Below are positions 13,128 through 36,138 of a DNA stretch of 64,000 nucleotides, piece after piece; the stretch's first letter is position 1; each line of letters begins with the position of its first letter. This stretch comes from Felis catus (lineage: Eukaryota). The position numbers and the translations under genes were made by a program. The DNA is taken from the NCBI RefSeq assembly GCF_018350175.1, contig NC_058379.1:29884001-29948000 (forward strand), in the 5' to 3' direction. The notes beneath the pieces were generated by a model. The model saw only the letters and a list, made by a program, of their open reading frames with translations. It was not told where the DNA came from and made no database searches.

Positions 13128-13926
13128 GTATGGGGGGAGGGCAGCCCATCCTGCCTCTCTCTTCCTGCTCATTCGTGTATTCCATTTATTCATTCATCTG
13201 TTCTCTTTATTTCTTTCATCCATTCATGTATTCTCTTTCTTCACATTTTTTAAAATGTTTATTTATTTTTGAGAGAGAGAGAAACAGAGAGACAGAGCGC
13301 AAGCAGGGGAGGAGCAGAGAGAGAGGGAGACACCAAATCCGAAGCAGGCTCCAGGCTCTGAGCTGTCAGTACAGAGCCCAATGTGGGGCTCAAACTCACA
13401 AGCTATGAGATCATGACCTGAGTCGAAGTTAGATGCTTAACTGACTGAGCCACCCAGGCTCCCCATTCACATTTTTCATTCATGCCCACCTCTTCTTTTG
13501 CAAAATGATTAAATATGGTTTCTCTTAAAAAGGCTCATATAAGTAGACACTTAAAGTGGATATAGAAACATGAAAAAGTTTCTCACAGGGTGTGAGTACA
13601 AACATACCCAAACCTATGCTGACAGAGTTCCCATATTTGAGCCATACTCTAAGCCATGAGCTTCCTGGCAGCCAAGGTACAAAGGATGCATTTTTGGGTT
13701 TTCATTACAGATGCAGAGTAGGCTGTTAGGGACTCCTCAGTTTCTGGGGTTTGTCATGTGAGGAAGCAGAGTTTTGAGCACATCCACCTGGGTATTTAGG
13801 GATACCCATCAACAAATCCCCTCTTGACTCAATACTGTTTATATGGCCAGGTGTCTATGTCTATATTAGTTATCTATTCCTATGAAAGAAAATACTCTGA
13901 AACTTACTGGTTGTGCACACATCTAG

Positions 13927-14056
13927 GTGTGAGCATGAATGTCCAGCCCATGTACCTAGGGGAAAGCGCCCCCAAGGAGCTCCAAGGAGCTGTGGCCATG
14001 ACCTCAGTCATCTTTACTGCCCTAGGGATTGTGATAGGCCAGGTGGTTGGACTCAG
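13927..14056 (+). pseudogene. SLC2A11: SLC2A11 exon 5
   Basis: atctag|(G)VSMNVQPMYLGESAPKELQGAVAMTSVIFTALGIVIGQVVGL(R)|gtaagc, 130 nt. Confidence 0.95.
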
Positions 14057-14608
14057 GTAAGCAACCTGCCTCCATGTGCACTGAGTGGTTTGAGGGGTGC
14101 CAGTAAAAGCCCTTCGCCTAAATTTCTCCTCTGTCCATTGAGTATTAAGGCATTGCTTCTTTGTATTAAGAAATCTTTGTATTGAAATCCTGTCTACACC
14201 TATCTGGCCAATACATAAAACAGGTGTTAGTCAACCACACTTCAGTGTAAATCACCATTTTGCATCCTCTCCAGATCAGGGAGCAAAGAACAGATCTTAA
14301 AAAGGGAGAGGGTGAAGATTTGGGCTTTTAAAGGGGAATGTGTCCTGGTCATCCCAGAAAAGAGGGGAGAGGGCAGATCCCAGAGCCCTGGGAAGAGGAG
14401 TTGCTACAGATAAGGTGGAGCCAACACCTGGAGGGAGGGATCTTGGTGTCCAGACCCAGAACTGGTTTGAGGAAACAGAGAGCAATGCAGATCCTCTGCC
14501 TTCAGGAGGGCAGGCAGGGGCCAGGTAGGTGGGTCAGGGGAGTAGGAGGCAAGTGGGCAGGGCTCTGGCAAGAAAGTACCTGGCCCAGCCTCTCTTTTGC
14601 CTCCCCAG

Positions 14609-14757
14609 GAAACTCCTGGGGGACCCACAGGCCTGGCACCTGCTGCTGGCCAGCTGCCTGGTGCCTGGGGTGCTCCAGCTTGCTTTCCTCCCTCTGCTCC
14701 CTGAGAGCTCGCGCTACCTCCTCATTGACCGTGGAGACATGGAGGCCTGCCTGGCAG
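14609..14757 (+). pseudogene. SLC2A11: SLC2A11 exon 6
   Basis: ccccag|KLLGDPQAWHLLLASCLVPGVLQLAFLPLLPESSRYLLIDRGDMEACLA|gtgagt, 149 nt. Confidence 0.95.
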
Positions 14758-17491
14758 GTGAGTCCTTGTGTTCCCAGACCACCCTTGACAAATGGGCACA
14801 TCTGTCCAGAGCATGTGAGTCTCCATTTCTTGGGTTTCATTTATCAGGAAAAAGCTGTCCCTCCTTTTTTGACAACCATTCATCTCTTCAAAACTATTTA
14901 CCAAGGGGTTGTCCTGAGTGCCAAGGCAGTGGGATAGAGCAGACCTGAACCCTGCCATCCAGGAACTGTAGGATGGTGCCAATAAAGAGCCCCCCCCCCC
15001 CCGCCATATATGTAAGATGAAACATGTTAAGACCTCACAGACCCAAGGCCAACTGGGTGCTGATGGGCTTATTCATTAGCTATGGCCATGATAGTGATGC
15101 CCAAGGAACAATACCAAATCTCTGGCTTAAAACAATAATCATTTACTGCATCCTCCACCCACTTACTTGCTGGGCTGGCTGCATGACTGCTGATCTCAGC
15201 TGGGCCAGCTCATGGTGTCTGGGAATCAGCTGGAGGTCAGCCAGTCCAGGCTGGTCTGGGCTGGAGTAGTTTAGCTCTGCTGCGCATGACTTTCCTCTCA
15301 CTCTTAGTACCAACAAGCTAGCCCAGGAATGTTCTTATTACAGCGACAGCAGAGGCACAAGAAAGCAGATCCAACTGCACAAACACTTTTCAAACCCATG
15401 TCCACCCCCCTCGCCATGCGCATTAACATCCCATTGGCCAAAGAGAGTCCTGTCCCTGAACCCAAAGTCAAGGGATGGGAAAATCAATGGCATATCCTCT
15501 CCCATGGCAAGGGGTATAGATTTGGAGAAGGGTGAAGACCAGGGCTCACTCAGGCACCCTCTCAGCTTGCCGTTGTGGCCACAGCTATTATTGATATCCC
15601 TCCCCTGTGCAAAACATGCTCAATGTCATCCAGGACCCCACAGTCTCATCCAATCATGGTGTCAGTCTTGAAGTCCAGGATCTTAAGATCACATCAAATC
15701 TATACGTGCCTTCTCTTGATCCAGACACCTAGGCACTAAAAACACAAGTCTGCCCCTCTGAACTCAGCACACAGTGTAGGACAGTGTAACCAGAACTAAC
15801 CCTCATTCCAAAGACAAGAAGTCAAGGAAGCAGGATGCAGTCACCAATCCTTAATGCCGATGCGCTCTTAAGAAAACGCTGCCAGATCTCCCTGCCTTGG
15901 GGGTAGGGAATGTTTCATGATCAAGTCCTGGCTCTGGCCCCTAGGAGGGGCTCCCCAGGTCATGGTTTCCCCAGGTTCTTGCTTCTTCCCTCTGAGATAT
16001 ACTTCCTAGTCACCTTCTGAAGAGGGCATTGCAAATGTACCCACAGAAAGTTGGGCACATTCAATTTGTCTTGGTCCCTTTCTCTCCAGGCTGGCAGAGC
16101 ATTTGTAAATATAATTTTCTTGAAACCGATGTGATTTTTCTATGTATTTGATCGATGTGCCAAAAAGCCATGCCCACAAGTCTTTCTGAGGCATGCTTCT
16201 CTCTTGAGACTCACTTACTGGAATTTGGGGCATGTCGGGAGGCTGGGGACCAACATCCTTAAGCCTTCTAAATGCCTCTTTTTCCATTGCAGTGAGTCAC
16301 TGCATTAAGCCACACCCTTAATTTGATTGTTGCCCTGCGTCCATGACTCACTGGCAGTGCTCTGGATTTGATCTTTGCTTTCAGGCTGTCACTTAATGTG
16401 AGCCTCTTTTTGCTAACTGGAGAGGCTGGAGATAAGCAACAGGTTTATTTTGTTTGTTTGTTTTTTTATTAAACCAACCTAGTGAGTTCTGGAACTAAAT
16501 CTTTTTCCCTCTGAAGGTTTTTTGAGCTCATGTTTCAATATTGTAAGCTTAGAATACTCAGCTAACAGCAACCAGTTCATGTTTTCAACATATAGAGGTT
16601 TCTTCACTCCAGTCCAGAAGTTCATTAGGTCTGTTTGTTTGTGTTTCTTTATTTTCTTCCATACTACTGCCCTGAATACCCAGGCTTCCATTTTTCCAGC
16701 CTCCTCACCATCTTCTGCCTGGTCTTGGAATCAATGCCATAGATCACAGGTCTAGTATGGTAGCACCTACTCCTGGTACCAGTTAATTCATTAGTTTTGT
16801 ATTGCTGCCTAATAATCACATCTCATGGCAAACCAAAGAAGCAATTACTTAGCTCAAGTGTCTGTGAGTTCTCTGGGGTTGGCTGATATAGGCTGTGCCT
16901 AGCTGGTGGCTCTGCTGGTCTTCGTCACTCATTCAGGTCAGCTGGGCACTGACAAAGTTAGGACAGTCTCAGCTGGGCCATTTCTGCTCCTCCTGGGACC
17001 AGTGGGCTAGCCCCATCTCATGTCTTTATGGTGATGGGAGAAAAGCAAGTAGAAATGAGCAAGGTCTCTTAAGGCTTGGGCAGAAATTTGCACATCCTCC
17101 TTACAACCTCATTCTATTGGCCAGAGTGAGTCACATGGCACAGCGCAGTGCCAAGGAGCAGGATGCATACTTGCCCCTTTTGTGGGGGCAGCTACAAAAA
17201 TCATCTAGCAGAGAGCATAGATACAGGGAAGGGTGGAGAACTGGGGACATTGCATAATTGTCATCTGCCACAATTGTGTCCCCTCTGATGTATCCACAGA
17301 ACCCCCAGCTCCTAAAGCCTTTTCTGGTTCTTGATGCCCTGAAATGACAGGGACAGGAAGATCATCCCCATCTGATCAGGGGGACCCAGAGAGAGAGTGA
17401 ACGGAGCTGGGGTGGGAGCTCACTGCAGGGCACCAAGCAGAGGTTGGGGGAAATGAGGCCCAGCGCCCTCTGCCCTTGCATCCTGCTCTAG

Positions 17492-17679
17492 CGCTGCAGC
17501 GGCTGCGGGGCACCACGGAGGTGGCGGAGGAGTTGGCTGAGCTGGAAGAGGAGCGTATCTTCTGCCAGGGCCGGCGTGCCCTGCGCCCATGGGAGTTGTT
17601 CCAGGATCGCGGGCTGAGGAGACAGGTGACAAGCCTCATGGTCCTGGGCAGTGCCTTGGAACTTTGCGGAACCAACTCG
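17492..17679 (+). pseudogene. SLC2A11: SLC2A11 exon 7
   Basis: ctctag|ALQRLRGTTEVAEELAELEEERIFCQGRRALRPWELFQDRGLRRQVTSLMVLGSALELCGTNS|gtgagg, 188 nt. Confidence 0.95.
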
Positions 17680-17773
17680 GTGAGGCTCCCCGCTGCGTCC
17701 TTCAACTGGTTGGGGGTGGGAGGGCTGCAGACCACAGGCAGCTGGCAGCCCACCCCTCTGCCCCCCTGTCCAG

Positions 17774-17883
17774 GTGTAGCCTACGCCTCCTCCGTGTTCC
17801 GGCAGGCCGGGATCCCCGAGGGGAAAGTCCAGTATGCTATCGTGGGGACTGGGAGCTGCGAGCTGCTCGTGGCCTGTGTCAGT
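17774..17883 (+). pseudogene. SLC2A11: SLC2A11 exon 8, with 1-nt deletion (immediate TAG and frameshift)
   Basis: gtccag|GTG TA- GCC TAC GCC TCC TCC GTG TTC CGG... where VYAYASSVFR is expected; the exon is 110 nt rather than 111; donor gtgagt at 17884. Confidence 0.92.
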
Positions 17884-18065
17884 GTGAGTTTATCTGAGTT
17901 TGTCGTGGGCTCAGGGGTTGACCCTCCACCAGCCCTGTGGGGGTGGGGGTGCATGGGGTGCTGACACCTGGAGGAGTGTCTTCTATCAAGTCCTCTACCT
18001 TGGGCCCTTTTCCACTCCAGTTCACTATGCTCAAATGGGGCGAGTCAGCAGCATTTGAAGTTTGT

Positions 18066-18100
<35 letters not shown>

Positions 18101-18436
18101 TTTTGAGAGAGAGAGAGCATGAATAAGGGAGGGGCAGAGAGAGAGAGAGGAGAGAGAGAGGGTGAGAGAGAATCCCAAGCATCACAGAGCTGTCAGCACA
18201 GAGCTCAGTGTGGGGCTGGAACCTGCAAACCTTGAGATCATGACCTGAGCCGAAACCAAGAGTGGGTGCTTAACCCACTCAGGCCCCCCCTAATAATGTC
18301 TTAATCTCCTGAAGCAATCAACTGCTCCTAATTGCTCCCTCACACACACCTGGAGCTGCCCACTGCTGGCCTTTAAACCAAAGGAAGCATGCTTCCAGCG
18401 CACAGGTCAGTTACTGAGAGCTCCTTTCCTTTGCAG

Positions 18437-18538
18437 TGTGCAGTGATAGAGATGGTGGGCCGCCGGAAGCTGTCGATAGCGGGGTATGGTCTGATGGCCT
18501 GCTGTGGAAGTATCTTTACAGTGGCCTTGTGCCTGCAG
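18437..18538 (+). pseudogene. SLC2A11: SLC2A11 exon 9
   Basis: ttgcag|CAVIEMVGRRKLSIAGYGLMACCGSIFTVALCLQ|gtagtg, 102 nt. Confidence 0.93.
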
Positions 18539-18620
18539 GTAGTGGGGCTGGGCATGAGGGTTGTGGCTTGGGGCAGCCTGGTCTCCACCTCACTTCACCC
18601 CCTCTGCCCCTTTGCTGTAG

Positions 18621-18696
18621 AGCCCCCTCCCCTGGATGCCCTACCTGGCCATGTTCTGCGTCTTTGCCTTCATCCTCAGCTTTGGCCTTGGCCCTG
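18621..18696 (+). pseudogene. SLC2A11: SLC2A11 exon 10
   Basis: ctgtag|SPLPWMPYLAMFCVFAFILSFGLGP|gtgagt, 76 nt. Confidence 0.93.
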
Positions 18697-18931
18697 GTGA
18701 GTGGGCCCAAGGAGCTCTGCACTTTGGGCTTTGCCAAAGGAACACGAATGTCTTCATGAATGACAAGTGGCTATAAATGCAATGTCACCCGCATGCCCTG
18801 CCACCCAGCCCCCCTGTACTGGGGCTTCTGGGAGGGAATGGCTGGAGAAGAGGACAAGGGGCCCCCACTCCTATGTTGGGGACAAGGTGGCAGCCCTGGC
18901 TGGCAGCCCCTGTCCCTGCTCTTCCTTCTAG

Positions 18932-19059
18932 CCGGAGTGACAGGGATTCTGGCCATGGAGCTCTTTGACCAGAAGGCCCGGCCTGCTGCCTCTATGGTCT
19001 GCCGGGTGCTCATGTGGACCATGCTCTTCCTGGTCAGGCTGGGGTTTCCCTTCATCATG
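18932..19059 (+). pseudogene. SLC2A11: SLC2A11 exon 11
   Basis: ttctag|(A)GVTGILAMELFDQKARPAASMVCRVLMWTMLFLVRLGFPFIM|gtaggc, 128 nt. Confidence 0.93.
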
Positions 19060-19270
19060 GTAGGCACCCTCCCCACCCTTCCCTTGCCTTAGGTTTTCCC
19101 CTGTGTCTGCAGGAGAGCCCCAGTGGGAAGTCTCCATCCTGGGAGCCTGAGGCTGGAGGGGATGGGACTCAAAAAGAGGGACAAATCCCTCATCATGACC
19201 TGTCATGTGGCCTTATGTCTGGTCCTGAACAGGGCACACACCAGGTCTCAGAGACTCTTTTCACTCACAG

Positions 19271-19471
19271 GAGGGCTTGTCCCACTTTCTTTATGTGCCT
19301 TTCCTGGGTGTTTGTGTCTGTGGGACCATCTGTACTGGCTTCTTCCTTCCCAAGACCAAAGGCAAGACCTTCCTGGAGATCTCTGAGGAACTTCACAGAC
19401 TCAACTTCCCTAGGCAGAGCCAGGGCCCTGAGTGGCTGGGCCCGGAAGTCATCCAGGCCACAGAGCTGTAG
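19271..19471 (+). pseudogene. SLC2A11: SLC2A11 exon 12 (terminal coding exon)
   Basis: tcacag|EGLSHFLYVPFLGVCVCGTICTGFFLPKTKGKTFLEISEELHRLNFPRQSQGPEWLGPEVIQATEL*. Confidence 0.95.
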
Positions 19472-24342: not shown

Positions 24343-24474
24343 NNNNNNNNNNNNNNNNNNNNNNNNNNNNNNNNNNNNNNNNNNNNNNNNNNNNNNNNNN
24401 NNNNNNNNNNNNNNNNNNNNNNNNNNNNNNNNNNNNNNNNNNNNNNNNNNNNNNNNNNNNNNNNNNNNNNNNNN
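24343..24474. other. Assembly gap (132 N)
   Basis: N run inside L1. Confidence 1.
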
Positions 24475-25350: not shown

Positions 25351-25661
25351 NNNNNNNNNNNNNNNNNNNNNNNNNNNNNNNNNNNNNNNNNNNNNNNNNN
25401 NNNNNNNNNNNNNNNNNNNNNNNNNNNNNNNNNNNNNNNNNNNNNNNNNNNNNNNNNNNNNNNNNNNNNNNNNNNNNNNNNNNNNNNNNNNNNNNNNNNN
25501 NNNNNNNNNNNNNNNNNNNNNNNNNNNNNNNNNNNNNNNNNNNNNNNNNNNNNNNNNNNNNNNNNNNNNNNNNNNNNNNNNNNNNNNNNNNNNNNNNNNN
25601 NNNNNNNNNNNNNNNNNNNNNNNNNNNNNNNNNNNNNNNNNNNNNNNNNNNNNNNNNNNNN
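25351..25661. other. Assembly gap (311 N)
   Basis: N run. Confidence 1.
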
Positions 25662-25929: not shown

Positions 25930-28900
25930 CGCCGGGAGGAGCAGAGAGAGAGAGGGAGAGAGAAATCCCAAGCAGGCTCTGCACTGATAGCACAGATAGG
26001 CCGCACTGATAGCGAGAACTCATGAACCGCCAGATCAGGACCCACGCTGAAACCACGAGTTAGATGCCCAACCGGCTGAGCCACCCAGGCACCCCACATT
26101 TTTAATTTCTTAATAGTGCCTAGGAGCAGAAATTTTTATTTTGATAAAGTCCAATTTATCAGTTTTATCTCATATGATTAATGCAGTTTGTGTCCTAAGA
26201 CGTCTTTGTCTATCATTGCAAAGATTTTCCTCTAAATGTTTGGTAGTTTTAACTTTTACTTTTATATTTATGTTGATCTTTTTTTTAACAGTTAAAAACA
26301 TTTTTTTAATGTTTATCTATTTTTGAGGGAGTAAGGAGGGGCAGAGAGAGGGGGGAAACAGGGAATCCCAAAGCAGGATCCATGCTGTCAGTGCAAAGCC
26401 CCATGCTGGGCTGGAACCCACTAACTGAACCATGAGATCATGACCTGAGCCAAAGTTGGACACTCAAGCAACTGAGCCACCTAGGCGCCCCATTGATGAT
26501 CAATTTTGAGTTAATTTTTGTTTATGGTATGAGATAAGGGTTGAATCTGTGGCCTCAGCCATCTTCCCAACCCTGGGGATCCTGATGGGACGGGTCAGAC
26601 TTGGACAACTTGGATGCCAACCTGCATGGAGGGTTTGGGGACACCAGTAAGTCTTTCTGTCCTCAAATGATTTTTCAAATCCCGTGGCCTGAAATCTGCC
26701 AATTTGGGCCAAGGCTATTATTAGCCTTCCCATTTGAGTGTGAACTGCCTGGTGAGACTCCATAGTGCAGGGGGCAGAGCGAAGGCTGCACAGAGTAGGG
26801 GGTGATGGTGACGGAGGGATTGTGGGAGGGTGTCAGCCTCAGAGCCTTGTTTTTCTCAAGACAGGGAGGGGCAGGGCCTAGGCCCCTGGGGAAACAGTGA
26901 GGGCATTATGAGACAGGAGAAACTTCCTGCTCCTCTTCTGGGCTGACATCCTGATCCAGAGCTGGTTAGGAAGAAGCACAGGACAATGCGGACCCTCTGT
27001 AGGCCTGCAGGCAAGAGAACAAGGGGTAAGGGAAGGGTTCTAGCAAGGATGCATCTGACCTGGACTCTCCTCTGCCTCCCCAGGGAGCTCCTGGGAAACC
27101 CACGCAGGCCTGGGCCTTGCTGCCTGCCAGCTGCCTGGTGCCTGGGCTGCTCCAGCTTGTCTCCCTGCCCCTGTTCCCTGAGAGCCTGTGCTACCTCCTC
27201 CCTGACTGCAGAGACGGGGAGGCCTGCCTGGTGGGTGAGTCCCTGACCTTGGGCCCTCAGACCACCCTTGATGGAGGGGTCCCACCAGCCAGCCCCTTCC
27301 CATCCCTGTGTACTGATATCTATCAGTCCCCCAACCCCCCTGAAATGCTCTCCTTCATAGACAAAGGCCCCCCAGCTCTGACTCACCTGCCCAGACCCCA
27401 GACAGTGTGGCTTCTCCCATCTTCCAGAGCACCAGCTTAGCTCCCTCTCCTGACTCACACACCTTCTCCCTGGCTTGCTAGTTACCCAGGCTTTGAGTCT
27501 CAGCTTCCGGGGCCCAGCCTCTCCCTGCTGGGCCAGCAAACCTGGCTACCAGTTCTCATGCCCTGCTCTCAAGGGTCAGGGCCGCATGGCTTCCAAAGGG
27601 CTGCAGTTGATTCTCCTGCCTTCGTCCTCATCCACTCCTCTCCGGACTCTGACACTCTGGTTCCCTCTTATTGGGACACAGGTTGTCCTCTCCATGCCTC
27701 AGCTGAATCATCCATTGATTACATTGATTCCTTCAGTTTATCCAGTTTATTCTCTTAGGGCCTGTTGTATCCCGAGGTGTCCACCACTGTCCCTGTCCTC
27801 AGGCTGCACCAGGGTTGGGAGGAAGTGGTGACCTTCACCTTGAAGAAAATCAAACAGTCTCACAACCACAGCATCAACAACACCATTCTGAGCCAACATC
27901 TATGGAGGCTTTTCCACTTATTGAGACTATTTTGAGTGCTTCACAAGCATTGGCACCTCTAACCTGAGCAAATGCCCCCAGAAATAAGTGCTTTTATTAT
28001 CCCTGTTTTACACAGGAGCAGGAGAGGCACATGAAGGCAGTGGCTTATCCAAGGAGCAAGGTCACACCACGAGGTGGTAGGCCAGGACTGAACCTGGGTG
28101 GTCATGACCACTGCAGTACACTGCCTCCAGGCCCTGGCTCTTCTGCTATCTGATCCCATTCTGTGGGGGAGGTCCAAAGGCCATCTGAAGGGTCCACGGT
28201 GACACTATGGGTTAGTGGTGGACCTGGGGCTTGAGCCAGTGCTGAGGGTAGATCCAGGGCTGGTGGCAGGGCATGGAGGCCAAGGCCAAAGGGCCACAGC
28301 TAAGGCTCTGCAGAGGCAGGAGGGAAGAGAGTCCACAGTTTGGCCCTTCCTACAGACCCTGCAGGAGGTCAGAGTCCCTGTGCTGCTGGTTCCCTGGCTC
28401 CATTCTACAGGCAGCAGGAAATCAAAGGTTAGGGAGAACCAGACACTCAAAGAAGGACAAGGATGCTGAGGGGGAGCCCAGGTCTCATCCCTGTGGCTCC
28501 AGCAGTGGAGCCACATTCCAGGGGTGGATGCCAACTTTTTGTGCATGTGTGCGCACACACATACATACTCGGCTTTCTTTGGAGGCAGACCATGAAAATG
28601 TGTCCATGGTGTCCCAGGGTGATGAGGCCTAGGGATGGGTAGGTTTCCAGCTAGAGGTGTCAGGAAGACTTGATGAGGGCCATAGATGCTACTGAATGGA
28701 GATGGGAAAGCCCTGGGACAGAGCGGATGTGTGGGCGGGGAAGTCCAGCATCCATGGGGCAGAAGAGCTCTAAGGTGAAGTGGGGGGGGGGGGGGCTGAA
28801 GGCCAGGTAGGGAATTTATCCTGTAATTATAGGGAGCCAGACCCTCCCATGGTCTCTTCCCATGACACTCCAATGACCAGTGACCTCATACTCTCTAAGG

Positions 28901-30289
28901 TGCCCTGCCACCAGGGTGCATGCTTATGTGTCCTCTGGGAAATAAGGATTTCCAAGAAGTCCAGGACACTACCTTTGGGACAGGCTGCTGTGAGCTCTCG
29001 TGGATGTGAGTCTGAGCGGGACTATGCAGCAGCAGGAGCAGAACAGTGCCTGGGGGCCTTCTGAGCAGCCTGGCCTTGGCTTTGAAGGATCCTGTGAGGA
29101 CAGGGGTGGGTTGGGACAGGACTTGGACACCAGGGAAAGAGAGCACAGTCACCCTCTTGGCTTGCATGTCCACCATTGGGGTTGAGGTCTATTAGCTCAT
29201 TTCCTGCTCCAAGACACTTGGGTACAATATGGTAAGTTCAGGCATTCACTGAGCACCTACTATAAGCCAGGGACTTTGCACTTTGTCCTTTTAGCCACTT
29301 TACTCTTCACACAAGCCTATGGGAAAGGAGTCACCACCTCACCCCCCATTCTGACACTGAGGCTCAGAGAGTTGAAGTGACTTCACCCAGATCACCTTCT
29401 CTGGACCGTGTCTCAGGGTACTGTGGGGAGAACTGGCTGTGACTGCTGGCTCCCCACCACACCTAGACCCTTTCTTTGCCATGTGGTGGTCTCCTGGCAG
29501 ACACCCCCCTCTGCAATCCCATACCTTCAGGTACAGCTGACCCCCATGTCTCTTTCCACTGTGACCAGAAGCAGGAATGAGGGGGGGGAGGAATCATCTT
29601 CGCTTGTCTTTGTTCACTGAATGTGTTCACCACATGTGAACCACAATGTGTTCAGTGAACAAGGGCATGGGACTGATGAGTTCAGGGACTGTCGAGGGCT
29701 CAGGGCTGGCTGGGTTTTTGCTGTAGGGGTGATGAACCTTGCGTGACCAGGAGAGAGATGCTGAGGGAAATGAGGCTCGTGGGAGGCTGTGGAAGGGGGG
29801 ACTGCCCCGGGACATGGGCTGCTGGCAGGGGAGAGGCAGCAAGGGGAAGAGCAGGTAGCCCCACAGTGGGGTGCCAGCAGGCCTCTGTCCTCCCTATGCC
29901 CTCTTTCCAGCTCAGGTAACTCAGATCCTGCCCACAGAAATGCTCCCTGCTTTTAGAGTCTGCTGAGTGCTTGCGTGGGCCATATTCCCCCTTACCCAGC
30001 TGGCGTGTCCCTACATTGGGAGGTTTTCTTCCCTGCTGCTTCGTGCCTGGCAGTCCTTACCCACCAGACGGTTCTAGGTCGTTTTCCTGTTAGCATCTTC
30101 GCCGTAAGCAATTCACCACATAACTAATTGGCTGTGAAACAATTTTGCTGTAAAAGATACAAAAAAACAAAACAAAACAAAACAAAAACTGGTTGGGCTC
30201 TTTGGTTTCATCAACTGGTTGACGGTTTGGTTTAGTTTCTCCATTGACACAGTGTTCCCATTTGTATATTATATGAATCTTAGCCTTCA

Positions 30290-31445
30290 TAATGGTCTAC
30301 ACAGGGGTGCAGAGTATTGACTGCATTTCCCATAGAACTATGGAAGGTCTATGAATGGATATGTGACAAAATACCAAGAACAAATAACAATGTACAAGTT
30401 TTCACAAAGAAAAAAACCCACTAAAACTGAACAAAAATAAAAATAGAACTATCCAGTAGTCACACTATTGGATACTTACCCCCCAAATACAAAAACATTC
30501 ATTCAAAGGGACACATACACCCCTATGTTTATAGCAGCATTATCTACAATACCAAATTATGGAAGCAGCCCCAGTGTCCATCGATTGATTAATGGATAAT
30601 GGATAAAGATGTGATATACACCCTATGTATATGTATATACGATCTCATGGTTCTTCAAGCCCTGCATAGGGCTCTCTGCTGTCAGCACAGAACCTGCCAC
30701 TGATCCTGTCTCCCTCTCTCTCCACCCCTCCCCACTCATGCTCTCTCCTTGTCTCTCAAAAATACACCTGTAAAAGCAAACAAACAGGGGCGCCTGGGTG
30801 GCTCAGTCAGTTGCATATCTGACTTTGGCTCAGATCATGATCTCCCAGTTCGTGGGTTCGAGCCCCTCATCCAGGTCTGTGCTGATAGCTTGGAGCCTGG
30901 AGCCTGTTTCAGATTCTGCATCTCTCTTTCTTCTGCCTCTTCCCAGCTCATTCTCTGTCTCTCTCTCAGAAATAAATAAACATTAAAAAATTAAAAAAAA
31001 GTAAAAACAAAATAAAAACGAACAAACAAAATGCACCCTAGTGTTTAGAAACAGATATCTCTCTTAATGAAGGACGAAAGTTTAGTGAAAAAAGAAAAAC
31101 TGATGCCTAATGAGTGAATAAAAAAAATGTGCAATACTATGAATGAAAGATCTTGAAAGCATACATAGATACAATCCACAAAATAAAATCAGTTATTTGC
31201 ATAGACTCTACACACGTTTTAAATGTATTCAAATATATTAGGGGCACCTGGGTGGCTCAGTTGGTTGCACGTCCAACTCCAGCGCAGGTCATGATCTCAC
31301 AGTTTGTGAGTTCAAGCCCCTTATAGGGCTCTTTGCTGTCTGCTCAGAGCCCACTTCAGATCCTCTGTCCCCATCTTTGCCCCTCCTGCACGTGCATACT
31401 GTCTCTATCTCTGTCTCTCAAAAATGAGTAAACATTAAAAAAAAA
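30290..31445 (+). mobile_element. Carnivore L1 ORF2/3' fragment plus three Can-SINEs
   Basis: cccctatgtttatagcagcattatctacaata...gtgtccatcgattgat; SINE heads at 30787 and 31241. Confidence 0.8.
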
Positions 31446-32149
31446 TAAATGTATCCAAAAATTTTGTATTTCTCAGCCAAGTAGTTTTATTATTCAGTTT
31501 TCATGTTTCATTAATTATGTCCTTTTTAATGAATGTCCCTCTTTTATTTTTCTTGATTTTATCTTTTATGGCAACACTGCCTTGTGACCGGTCAGTGATG
31601 TGGCAAAAACGTTTGCCATGAAAATGCCTGCAGCAAAAACACTTGCAGTAAGAATGCCTGGACATGGCACTCAGGAAGTCCTCTGCAGGAGCCAGGACTT
31701 GCACTGGGGCTGCAAATGACACAAACCCTGATAAGCAGTGCTTTGAGCAGAGAGGGGTTTATTTTTCAGAGCCCCAGGCTCCTCTGGGCTGCCACTCCTG
31801 GCTCTTTGGCCTGTGTTTTTCCAGCTCATGGTTGCCTAACAGTTGCTGCATATCTGGGGGTCATGTCCAAGTTTGGGGAGTGGGCAGGAGGAAAAGGGAA
31901 GGGTGGCACCTCTGTTAGCAAATCACCTGCTTCCCCATAAACCTCACACATGGCATGAGCTTCACGTGGCCATGCCTGGTTGTCAGGGGCTCTGGGGCAG
32001 CGAGTGTTCTAATCAAACAGAACTGAGATTCGGTCAGTGAGGAGGAAAGGGGAGATGATCCCAGGCAGCTCAGCAGCCTGCCGACACCTCCCACTGCATG
32101 TGTCCCTGCTGTTCAGCAAATAATTATCAAGCCCCTATCAATGCCAAGT

Positions 32150-32690
32150 GTATTACCTTTCTATTGCTCCTAGAACAAATCAACACACATTTGTCAGCTT
32201 AAAACAACATAGATTTATTATCTGACACTTTCTGTGGGTCAGAAGTCCAGCATCAAGTGACTGGGTCTTTTGCTTAGGGTCTTGTACGGCCAAAGTCAAG
32301 GTGTCCCTAGGTCAACTAGAGAAGAACCCACTTCTCCCAAGTCCATTCAGGCTGTTAGCAGAATCCAGTTCCTTGTGGTTGTATGACTGAGGCTCCTAGC
32401 CTCCTTCATCTTCAGAGCCAGTAATGGCGCATCAAGTCCTTCTCCTGCTTTTGAGTCTGACTTCCCCTTCTGCCGCATCTCACTGAGTCTAGCTGGAAAA
32501 AATTATCCGCTTTTAAGGGCTCGTGTGATTACATTGGGCCAACCCAGATAATCCATAATGACCCCCCAATTTGAAGGTCCGCAATTCTAGTCACATCTGT
32601 GTGGTGCCTTCTGCCGTGTAACATAACATTCACAGATTCCAGGGGTTAGATCATGGACATCTTTGGAGGCCCTCTGCCTACCACTGAGGT
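32150..32690. mobile_element. MaLR (MLT1-like) solo LTR
   Basis: tgtattacctttctattgct...gcttaaaacaacatagatttattatc...ggttagatcatggacatctttggaggcc...ctaccac, the typical MLT1 pattern. Similar remnants at ~7270-7560, 15020-15540, 16780-17260 and 33300-33610. Confidence 0.65.
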
Positions 32691-34303
32691 AATAATGGGT
32701 CAAGGAGGTGGGCAAACAGCGATGGCCAAAAAGAGACAGTCCAGTCCCCTCTCTCATGGAGCTTACCACCTGGCAAGGAAACATTAACGCACAAATAGGA
32801 ATAAGGTTATGGCCTCAAAGGAAGGAGAGGTGCTGGACATGTTACAGGACCACATTAAAGCCAGGGGTTCTGGGGCTTTCCCAAGGAACTGAGGTAGATA
32901 AGGTAAAGTGCATGCAAACCACATTTCAGGACCAATGCCAGAGCCAAGAGCCAGGAGCATGGTCCCTAAGGACAGTGCACAGACTCAGGGACCAAGGGGG
33001 AGGGGTGCAAACTGTGGGGCAGGGCATTGTGACATGCCAGGGCATTGTGACAGTACTACCTCTAATATCAGCGGGGACTATCACCAGTATTTAGGCCGCT
33101 TGGTCCTCAGAACACTCCTCTGTAAGGTGGACACTACTATCTTCAAATTACAGGTGGGGGAACAAACTGAATCTCAGAGAGGGGGTGAGTCAAGTGTCCA
33201 AGCTAGTAAGGGGTGGGCCTGTGAATGATATCACCTCCCCAGATGCCCTTCTAGAAAGATGGCACTGACTGCTACTGGGAAAGGGAAGGGTAATTAGTAA
33301 GTAGGCTGTCCTGATTAGGGAAGACTGCCCTATGCTACAGTAAACCTCAAAATCGCAGTGGCTCACCTACAGGGGCATTGCTGGTGTTTGCTGGTGTGGA
33401 TCCATCTTGTCACACTTCCACCATCTCAGAGAACCGGGTGCAGGTGCAGGCTCTTGAATATTCTTCCTGGAGTCACTTACGTAACTTCTGTTTGCATTTC
33501 ATTGGGCAAGGTAAGTCATATGGCCAGGTCCGCTGGCAGGGGGCAGGGAAATAGACTCCTCTCCCAGGAAGAACAGTCCACCATGGCGTTATCACAGGGT
33601 CCATGCTAGGCCAAAGGTGAAGCCAGCTAGTTTAAACTAAGGTGGTGGTGGTGGTGATGGGCTGGGTGGAGACAGGGAAGGATAAGGGTGACAGTGGAGG
33701 GAAGTACATTTCACTGGCAGGCCAACAGGTGTGGGAGGAATAGTCATGCACTTGGATTTGGACACAGGAAGCAGAAGGTGCTGAATTGGCTACTGAGCTC
33801 GGAAGGTGGGGTAGCTGTCGACATGGTGTGGAGTGCATCAGTCCATCAGTGGTAAGGAGGCCTGGGCATAGGGTGTGACAGTGAGGAAGCAGCCTGGGGC
33901 CTAGGTGAAGGAACAAACACTTGCAGGGTATTGCACAACTGGGCCATGGGACCTACTTGAATGGATACTGGCTGGTCCCACAGGCACAAGTGTCCTTGCT
34001 GTAGCATATCAAGGCCAGTGTGTGCTGTGCCACCTTAACTGGATAGCACCTGCCAGATGCCAAAGACAGGACCTTCCTGGAGAGCTCTGAGGACTTGGCC
34101 AAAAACAGTGTGCCCCTTAGAGCACCTGAGAGAGATCTGTTCCCCAGCACAGCACCCTGACCAGAGGGGGCTCTTCAGAGTGTAAGTGGGGTGGCCACGT
34201 AGCCACAAGCCCTTCTTCCCAGGGATGGCAAGGCCTGCAGGCCTGGCCAGGGTCCCAATCCAGCCACTGCCCTATCCTCTTCCTGCCGTGTCATGACTGT
34301 CTT

Positions 34304-34734: not shown

Positions 34735-34773
<39 letters not shown>
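34735..34773 (+). repeat. (AC)19 microsatellite upstream of MIF
   Basis: Perfect AC run about 615-650 bp upstream of the ATG. Confidence 0.95.
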
Positions 34774-34775
<2 letters not shown>

Positions 34776-35009
34776 CCCAGGACTACAGCCTTGGGGAACA
34801 TGTAGCCCTGGAAACTCAGGGCACACAAAGGTTCGGTGCGTGTGGTGGAATGGGCTGGGACTTCATCTACTTTGCTGGCTGTGAGCTCCTGGCGGGCGGC
34901 AAGGGGCCACGTGCTCAGTTAACTGCTGCATCTCGAACTCCTGGCACACACACGTCGCTGAATAAACGTCAGTGACTAAAGTAAAGGACTAGCGAAGAAA
35001 CGAAGGATA

Positions 35010-36138
<1,129 letters not shown>

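Follow-up and report, generated by a model that had tools for sequence, protein, structure and literature searches.

Remnants of an old tandem duplicate of SLC2A11 between SLC2A11 and MIF in the cat genome

Five exon remnants lie between SLC2A11 and MIF

SLC2A11 (GLUT11) is a class II facilitative hexose transporter gene. In a 64,000-nucleotide stretch of the Felis catus genome (contig NC_058379.1, positions 29,884,001 to 29,948,000; hereafter the window), it is followed on the same strand by MIF, and the approximately 16 kb between the two genes formed the analysed interval. This interval carries degraded, collinear matches to SLC2A11 exons. We refer to the gene itself as copy 1 and to the degraded matches as copy 2, which is very probably the fossil of an old tandem duplication of SLC2A11.

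DNA profiles were built from each copy 1 exon with 40 bp of flanking sequence in six mammals (cat, hyena, panda, rhino, gibbon, and tenrec) and were searched by nhmmer. Five remnants were detected downstream of SLC2A11, all on the plus strand and in the same order as in copy 1, with E-values from 2e-57 to 2.5e-8. A profile hidden Markov model (HMM) of mammalian GLUT11 proteins, which were gathered by a database search with the open frame spanning copy 1 exons 7–8, was used at the protein level. In window coordinates, the remnants and the two genes that border the interval are as follows:

26545–26635, plus strand, exon 5 remnant (nhmmer E 6e-9)
27009–27292, plus strand, exon 6 remnant with intron flanks, exon proper at 27082–27233 (nhmmer 27043–27277, E 2e-57)
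28909–29035, plus strand, exon 8 remnant (nhmmer E 6e-9)
29873–30032, plus strand, exon 11 remnant (nhmmer E 2.5e-8)
33970–34168, plus strand, exon 12 remnant, the C-terminal tail (nhmmer 34018–34097, E 4e-11; extended by pairwise alignment)
2518–19468, plus strand, copy 1, SLC2A11, coding exons 2–12 (11 coding segments by the mammalian GLUT11 protein HMM)
35384–36010 (approximate), plus strand, MIF, three exons from exon translations, the downstream border of the interval

The initial annotation of this DNA had placed remnants of exon 5 (26547–26604, donor lost), exon 6 (27084–27234, with a 2-nt insertion and intact splice sites), exon 8 (28916–29005), and exon 12 (approximately 34018–34160), and all of them were recovered in the profile searches at essentially these positions. 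The strongest match was that of exon 6. When the window was compared with itself by blastn, 27030–27271 matched 14555–14788 in copy 1 with 78% identity over 242 bp (E 2e-51), and the exon 6 tract was 80% identical to panda copy 1 over 288 bp. The protein HMM matched it at 27102–27236 with 50.9 bits (E 4e-15). The 2-nt insertion shifts the reading frame, and inspection of the splice sites found both the AG acceptor and the GT donor intact. In a DNA search of the whole 2.43 Gb cat genome, the exon 6 tract matched only itself and exon 6 of copy 1. No other GLUT11-like locus was found in the cat genome, the remaining GLUT loci being 24–52% identical to GLUT11.

The other remnants are shorter or more diverged. 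Exon 5 was matched by the protein HMM at 26546–26629 (9.5 bits, E 0.015) and was 79% identical to panda copy 1 over 52 nt; only the 3ʹ part of this exon is left in carnivores, and its donor GT is lost. Over 88 nt, the exon 8 remnant (28916–29003) and panda copy 1 were 69% identical; the remnant has lost 12 nt and contains a frameshift. The self-comparison matched 28957–29003 to 17825–17872 with 77% identity, and the protein HMM gave a weak match at 28953–28997 (3.9 bits). For exon 11, tblastn matched 29895–30017 (E 0.02–0.06) and the protein HMM gave 1.9 bits. The exon 12 remnant, which lies approximately 1.2 kb before the MIF start codon, was 68% identical over 183 nt in the pairwise alignment and was detected by tblastn (E 3.5e-5), by the protein HMM (34050–34130, E 0.01), and in the self-comparison (34060–34093 vs 19356–19389, 91% identity). 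The self-comparison returned three non-repeat, collinear matches on the same strand, so that collinearity extends beyond exon 6, and all remaining matches were between short interspersed elements (SINEs).

The initial annotation had named a different, weak exon 11 candidate, at 33786–33851. Neither the protein HMMs nor the DNA exon profile (E < 5) reported a match there, and the exon 11 remnant found by the profile lies 3.8 kb upstream of it. On this evidence, the earlier candidate does not belong to the fossil. An exon 10-like match at 29332–29359 was in the right place and stayed below significance (E 3.5). With the nhmmer exon profiles, exons 1–4, 7, 9, and 10 of copy 2 left no detectable remnant in cat, hyena, panda, rhino, or gibbon.

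Besides the seven undetectable exons, the insertion in exon 6, and the lost donor of exon 5, the lesions of copy 2 comprise stops or deletions in exons 5, 8, 11, and 12. Approximately 180 codon positions can be recovered from cat copy 2, with frameshifts and stops, and there is no complete Sugar_tr (PF00083) frame.

Copy 2 has the structure of a genomic duplicate

The remnants are set apart by intron-sized spacers. The spacing between exons 5 and 6 is approximately 560 bp in copy 2 vs 690 bp in copy 1, and the intron sequence around exon 6 aligns with that of copy 1 over approximately 75 bp upstream and 55 bp downstream, at approximately 80% identity. With the spacing of intron 5 kept, alignable intron on both sides of exon 6, and both splice sites of that exon still in place, copy 2 reads as a genomic duplicate rather than a retrocopy. 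These sequence features make it a tandem copy of SLC2A11 genomic DNA in the orientation of its parent, and bear out the intron homology that had been proposed for it.

Orthologous remnants indicate that the duplicate is old

The comparison drew on five further mammals, each represented by its SLC2A11 locus plus flanks of 10 kb: hyena (L001), panda (L002), white rhino (L003), gibbon (L004), and tenrec (L005). The tenrec was the sole representative of Afrotheria. The cat interval was collinear with the downstream flanks of hyena (approximately 84% identity), panda (approximately 77%), rhino (approximately 69–80%), and gibbon (approximately 66–78%), and nhmmer detected copy 2 exons at the orthologous place in each of these four species. 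Hyena carries exons 5, 6, and 11 and a weak exon 8, its exon 11 (L001:42785–42963, E 2.3e-8) being an independent orthologous match. Panda carries exons 5 and 6, after which the panda locus sequence ends. In rhino, exon 5 (E 1e-34) and exon 6 (E 1e-66) were found. Of exon 5, gibbon keeps the 5ʹ half (E 1e-8); its exon 6 is deleted, and its exon 12 (L004:46627–46750, E 7e-8) lies approximately 1 kb upstream of MIF, a position like that in cat. The initial annotation had described copy 2 as far more diverged than copy 1 and as having died much earlier; its greater decay and its old age are both borne out by these remnants.

To compare residue states, copy 2 nucleotides were projected onto the codons of panda copy 1. 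A 3-nt deletion and an ILMG motif in exon 5 are common to copy 2 of cat, hyena, panda, and rhino. In exon 12, the copy 2 states SHR, HL, KDRT, and SEDL are common to cat and gibbon, which have at least five amino-acid replacements in common over 42 codons. Because these changes are specific to copy 2 and recur among its orthologous remnants in hyena, panda, rhino, and gibbon, the duplicate should predate the boreoeutherian ancestor, in which it was probably already present. If the mean identity of copies 1 and 2 (approximately 72%) is scaled by the neutral rate at which copy 2 of cat and copy 2 of panda have diverged, the two copies would, as a crude estimate, have separated on the order of 100–170 million years ago; whether the duplication came before or after the placental radiation could not be read from the exon 6 DNA tree.

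Copy 2 appears to drift neutrally, with probable gene conversion in rhino

Between cat and panda, copy 2 was 84% identical in exon 5, 83–85% in intron 5, 85% in exon 6, and 84% in the downstream flank. The former exons thus appear to be under no extra constraint among carnivores, which fits neutral drift.

In rhino, exon 6 of copy 2 was 95% and exon 5 was 80% identical to the rhino's own copy 1. In the exon 6 DNA tree, rhino copy 2 grouped with rhino copy 1 (82/81). This is best explained by a lineage-specific gene conversion of rhino exon 6 from the parent gene. The reading frame of rhino copy 2 exon 6 (L003:28858–29082) is open, and this exon scores 91.5 bits, against 93.1 bits for the real one.

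The duplication falls within mammalian SLC2A11

In a maximum-likelihood (ML) protein tree, mammalian SLC2A11 was nested within vertebrate SLC2A11 on a long stem, and the five copy 2 rows were monophyletic (92/80) inside the mammalian SLC2A11 clade (100/100). The monophyly of copy 1 was not rejected in the approximately unbiased (AU) test (p-AU 0.11). All five remnants show mammal-specific SLC2A11 states: ASCLVPG, SAIF..LGI.MG, V.AY.S, GTG.CEL, and SH..TG..EDL. In exon 12, the states of the fossil are those of mammals and not those of non-mammalian SLC2A11. Tree and residue states together therefore place the duplication within the mammalian lineage, after most mammal-specific changes had arisen.

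A fossil of a tandem duplication, probably partial or early dead

We consider it very probable that this stretch is a non-functional fossil of an old SLC2A11 tandem duplication, older than the common ancestor of carnivores, perissodactyls, and primates, and drifting neutrally since. A duplicate covering at least exons 5 to 12 would have been placed directly downstream of its parent on the same strand, after mammal-specific residues arose in the mammalian lineage and before that common ancestor. Most of its exons would then have been lost under neutral drift through decay, deletion, and insertions, and copy 2 would have been patched at least once, in rhino exon 6, by gene conversion from the parent. 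Nothing in the sequence indicates a present coding or other role.

Several observations weigh against this interpretation. First, the remnants of exons 11 and 12 are 4 kb apart, compared with 200 bp in copy 1, and about half of the spacer is shared with gibbon. As the spacer parts 31966–32742 and 33037–34100 align to gibbon, an old insertion or rearrangement would predate the carnivore/primate split. Second, the similarity between copies 1 and 2 is uneven: exon 6 is 82–86% identical in carnivores, exon 5 is approximately 60% identical, and intron 5 is approximately 50–60% identical, values too different for a single duplication event whose product then decayed evenly. The interpretation therefore requires that exon 6 was converted early on, which may also be why this exon is so well kept in carnivores. 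Third, the pseudo-peptides in the protein tree were projected onto panda codons, with a possible pull toward carnivore copy 1; this may explain why the copy 2 rows were placed, with weak support, beside carnivore copy 1. Fourth, no remnant was found in tenrec with the profiles of either copy, the tenrec sequence being fast-evolving and having a 1.6 kb gap in the interval. Within the spacer of the cat window (30033–33969), the part from 30.6 to 31.45 kb consists of carnivore SINEs.

The initial annotation had gone further, reading the locus as the record of two successive losses of a GLUT11 pair. On this reading, early mammals would have had in copy 2 a second GLUT11 gene that was complete and functional; it was lost long before copy 1 and may still work in some mammals. 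The remnants do run from exon 5 to exon 12 in the correct order, exon 6 keeps both splice sites and, in panda and rhino, an open frame, and no disabling lesion is clearly common to all lineages, so the date of death is not fixed. However, exons 1–4 are undetectable in five species, even where exon 5 is as well kept as in rhino, and in both rhino and gibbon copy 2 exon 5 follows the stop codon of copy 1 after only approximately 4.5 kb. The exon 12 replacements common to cat and gibbon point to relaxed constraint before these lineages split. All four other species with a detected copy contain fragments only, and the best 120 relatives of GLUT11 in the database are all named SLC2A11 and belong to SLC2A11 proper. 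Two successive losses presume a complete working copy 2, and with seven exons undetectable in five species we regard this history as rather unlikely.

Copy 2 may instead have been a 5ʹ-truncated, partial duplicate that was never a working gene. We favour, without regarding it as proven, a partial or early-dead duplicate, because seven exons are undetectable, the gap in rhino and gibbon is short (approximately 4.5 kb), and the exon 12 replacements are shared. That early mammals had a working GLUT11 pair, of which an intact copy 2 descendant perhaps survives in marsupials, monotremes, xenarthrans, or most afrotherians, seems improbable; if it were true, the slot between SLC2A11 and MIF, which in other vertebrates is occupied by a different second GLUT11-like gene, would have gained and lost an occupant twice over the course of vertebrate evolution.

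Copy 2 is distinct from the second GLUT11-like gene of birds

A paralogue, SLC2A11B, is present in birds and ectotherms, is reported to be lost in mammals, and is a pigment-cell gene (PMC7935293, PMC8432899). In the dipper (Cinclus cinclus, L006), the gene order is DERL3 on the minus strand, the SLC2A11 orthologue on the plus strand, and, 4 kb downstream of it, a second Sugar_tr gene on the plus strand. The fossil and this second gene are placed alike: each comes immediately after SLC2A11 and runs in its orientation. The fossil could in principle be the mammalian remnant of an SLC2A11B-type paralogue, overwritten in patches by gene conversion from SLC2A11, and such conversion does occur at the locus, as in rhino. 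The residues nevertheless go with mammalian SLC2A11: in exons 5, 6, and 8, the exons for which the comparison with bird gene 2 was made, the fossil has the mammal-specific states and not those of bird gene 2. A tree forced to unite copy 2 and bird gene 2 was rejected (difference in log-likelihood 83.6, p-AU 1e-4), and conversion between paralogues that are approximately 45–49% identical in protein is very unlikely. The SLC2A11B origin is thus highly improbable, and on the evidence of tree and residues the fossil is not a remnant of the bird second GLUT11-like gene.

The dipper second GLUT11-like gene occupies L006:23019–29145. In the tree, it grouped with the fish genes named 'slc2a11, like' (96/94, with long branches), apart from the fish genes named slc2a11b by NCBI; in vertebrates at large, the labels SLC2A11B, 11-like, and 11 may not track orthology. 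When the published pigeon SLC2A11B primers for quantitative polymerase chain reaction (qPCR; PMC7935293) were searched with up to 5 mismatches and in the expected orientation, they matched neither dipper gene, which leaves dipper gene 2 a candidate for the SLC2A11B of the literature.

That the matches beyond exon 6 are due to chance or to another GLUT paralogue, as the low single protein HMM scores of exon 8 (3.9 bits) and exon 11 (1.9 bits) might suggest, has next to no probability, given significant DNA profile E-values for exons 5, 8, 11, and 12 (2.5e-8 or better) on one strand and in the correct order, independent orthologous matches in hyena, rhino, and gibbon, and the low identity to GLUT11 of the other GLUT loci in the genome.

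Comparison with known pseudogenes, transcription, and significance

Copy 2 resembles unprocessed pseudogenes in being a genomic copy with introns beside its parent on the same strand, with frameshifts, stops, lost splice sites, and missing exons, and in evolving neutrally with occasional gene conversion by the parent. It differs from them in being unusually old yet recognisable, predating the carnivore/primate split, and in being very patchy, with 5 of 12 exons left and 5ʹ exons that may never have been present. Compared with SLC2A11 itself, to whose exons 5, 6, 8, 11, and 12 the remnants align and whose mammal-specific residues and clade they share, copy 2 has no continuous frame and, with seven exons undetectable, cannot encode a 12-helix transporter. 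With the second GLUT11-like gene (SLC2A11B) of birds, reptiles, and fishes, it shares the slot seen in the dipper, but not the residue states or the position in the tree.

No paper describing an SLC2A11 pseudogene in the SLC2A11–MIF interval came up in our literature search, which returned only papers on read-through transcripts and on SLC2A11B. Human SLC2A11-MIF read-through transcripts have been described (PMC6862657). The annotated range of gibbon SLC2A11 (L004:37049–47299) extends 10 kb past the stop codon, through the fossil, to approximately 400 bp before the MIF coding start. Taken together, the gibbon range and the human transcripts indicate that in primates the fossil is probably transcribed as part of a read-through RNA.

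The fossil would give the GLUT family a dated event, a tandem duplication of SLC2A11 in the mammalian stem whose product was dead, or had never been alive, by the time boreoeutherians radiated, and it separates this copy from the pigment-cell paralogue reported as lost in mammals. It also explains the GLUT-like sequence found upstream of MIF in several mammals, which could otherwise be mistaken for conserved regulatory elements, SLC2A11 exons, or exons of SLC2A11-MIF read-through transcripts. Otherwise, copy 2 looks like an ordinary unprocessed pseudogene, with no sign of a present function.

Copy 1 and other features of the window

Several exons of copy 1 were approximately 97% identical to the predicted proteins of other cats (leopard cat and lynx), and the SINEs of the window are of the carnivore type, in keeping with a felid source. 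Several cat copy 1 exons scored lower with the mammalian GLUT11 HMM than those of hyena, panda, and rhino; exon 9, for example, gave 44.8 bits in cat vs 53–61 bits in these species. Exon 4 of cat copy 1 was 75% identical to that of panda.

At the downstream border, the gibbon annotation has, in the orthologous position, a gene that carries the Pfam domain of MIF. The window contains runs of N at 9550–9681 (132 bases), 24343–24474 (132 bases), and 25351–25661 (311 bases), the latter two falling between copy 1 and the exon 5 remnant. Approximately 600 bp upstream of the MIF start codon, at 34740–34800, there is a (CA)n-type dinucleotide microsatellite, which translates into an HT/TH run.

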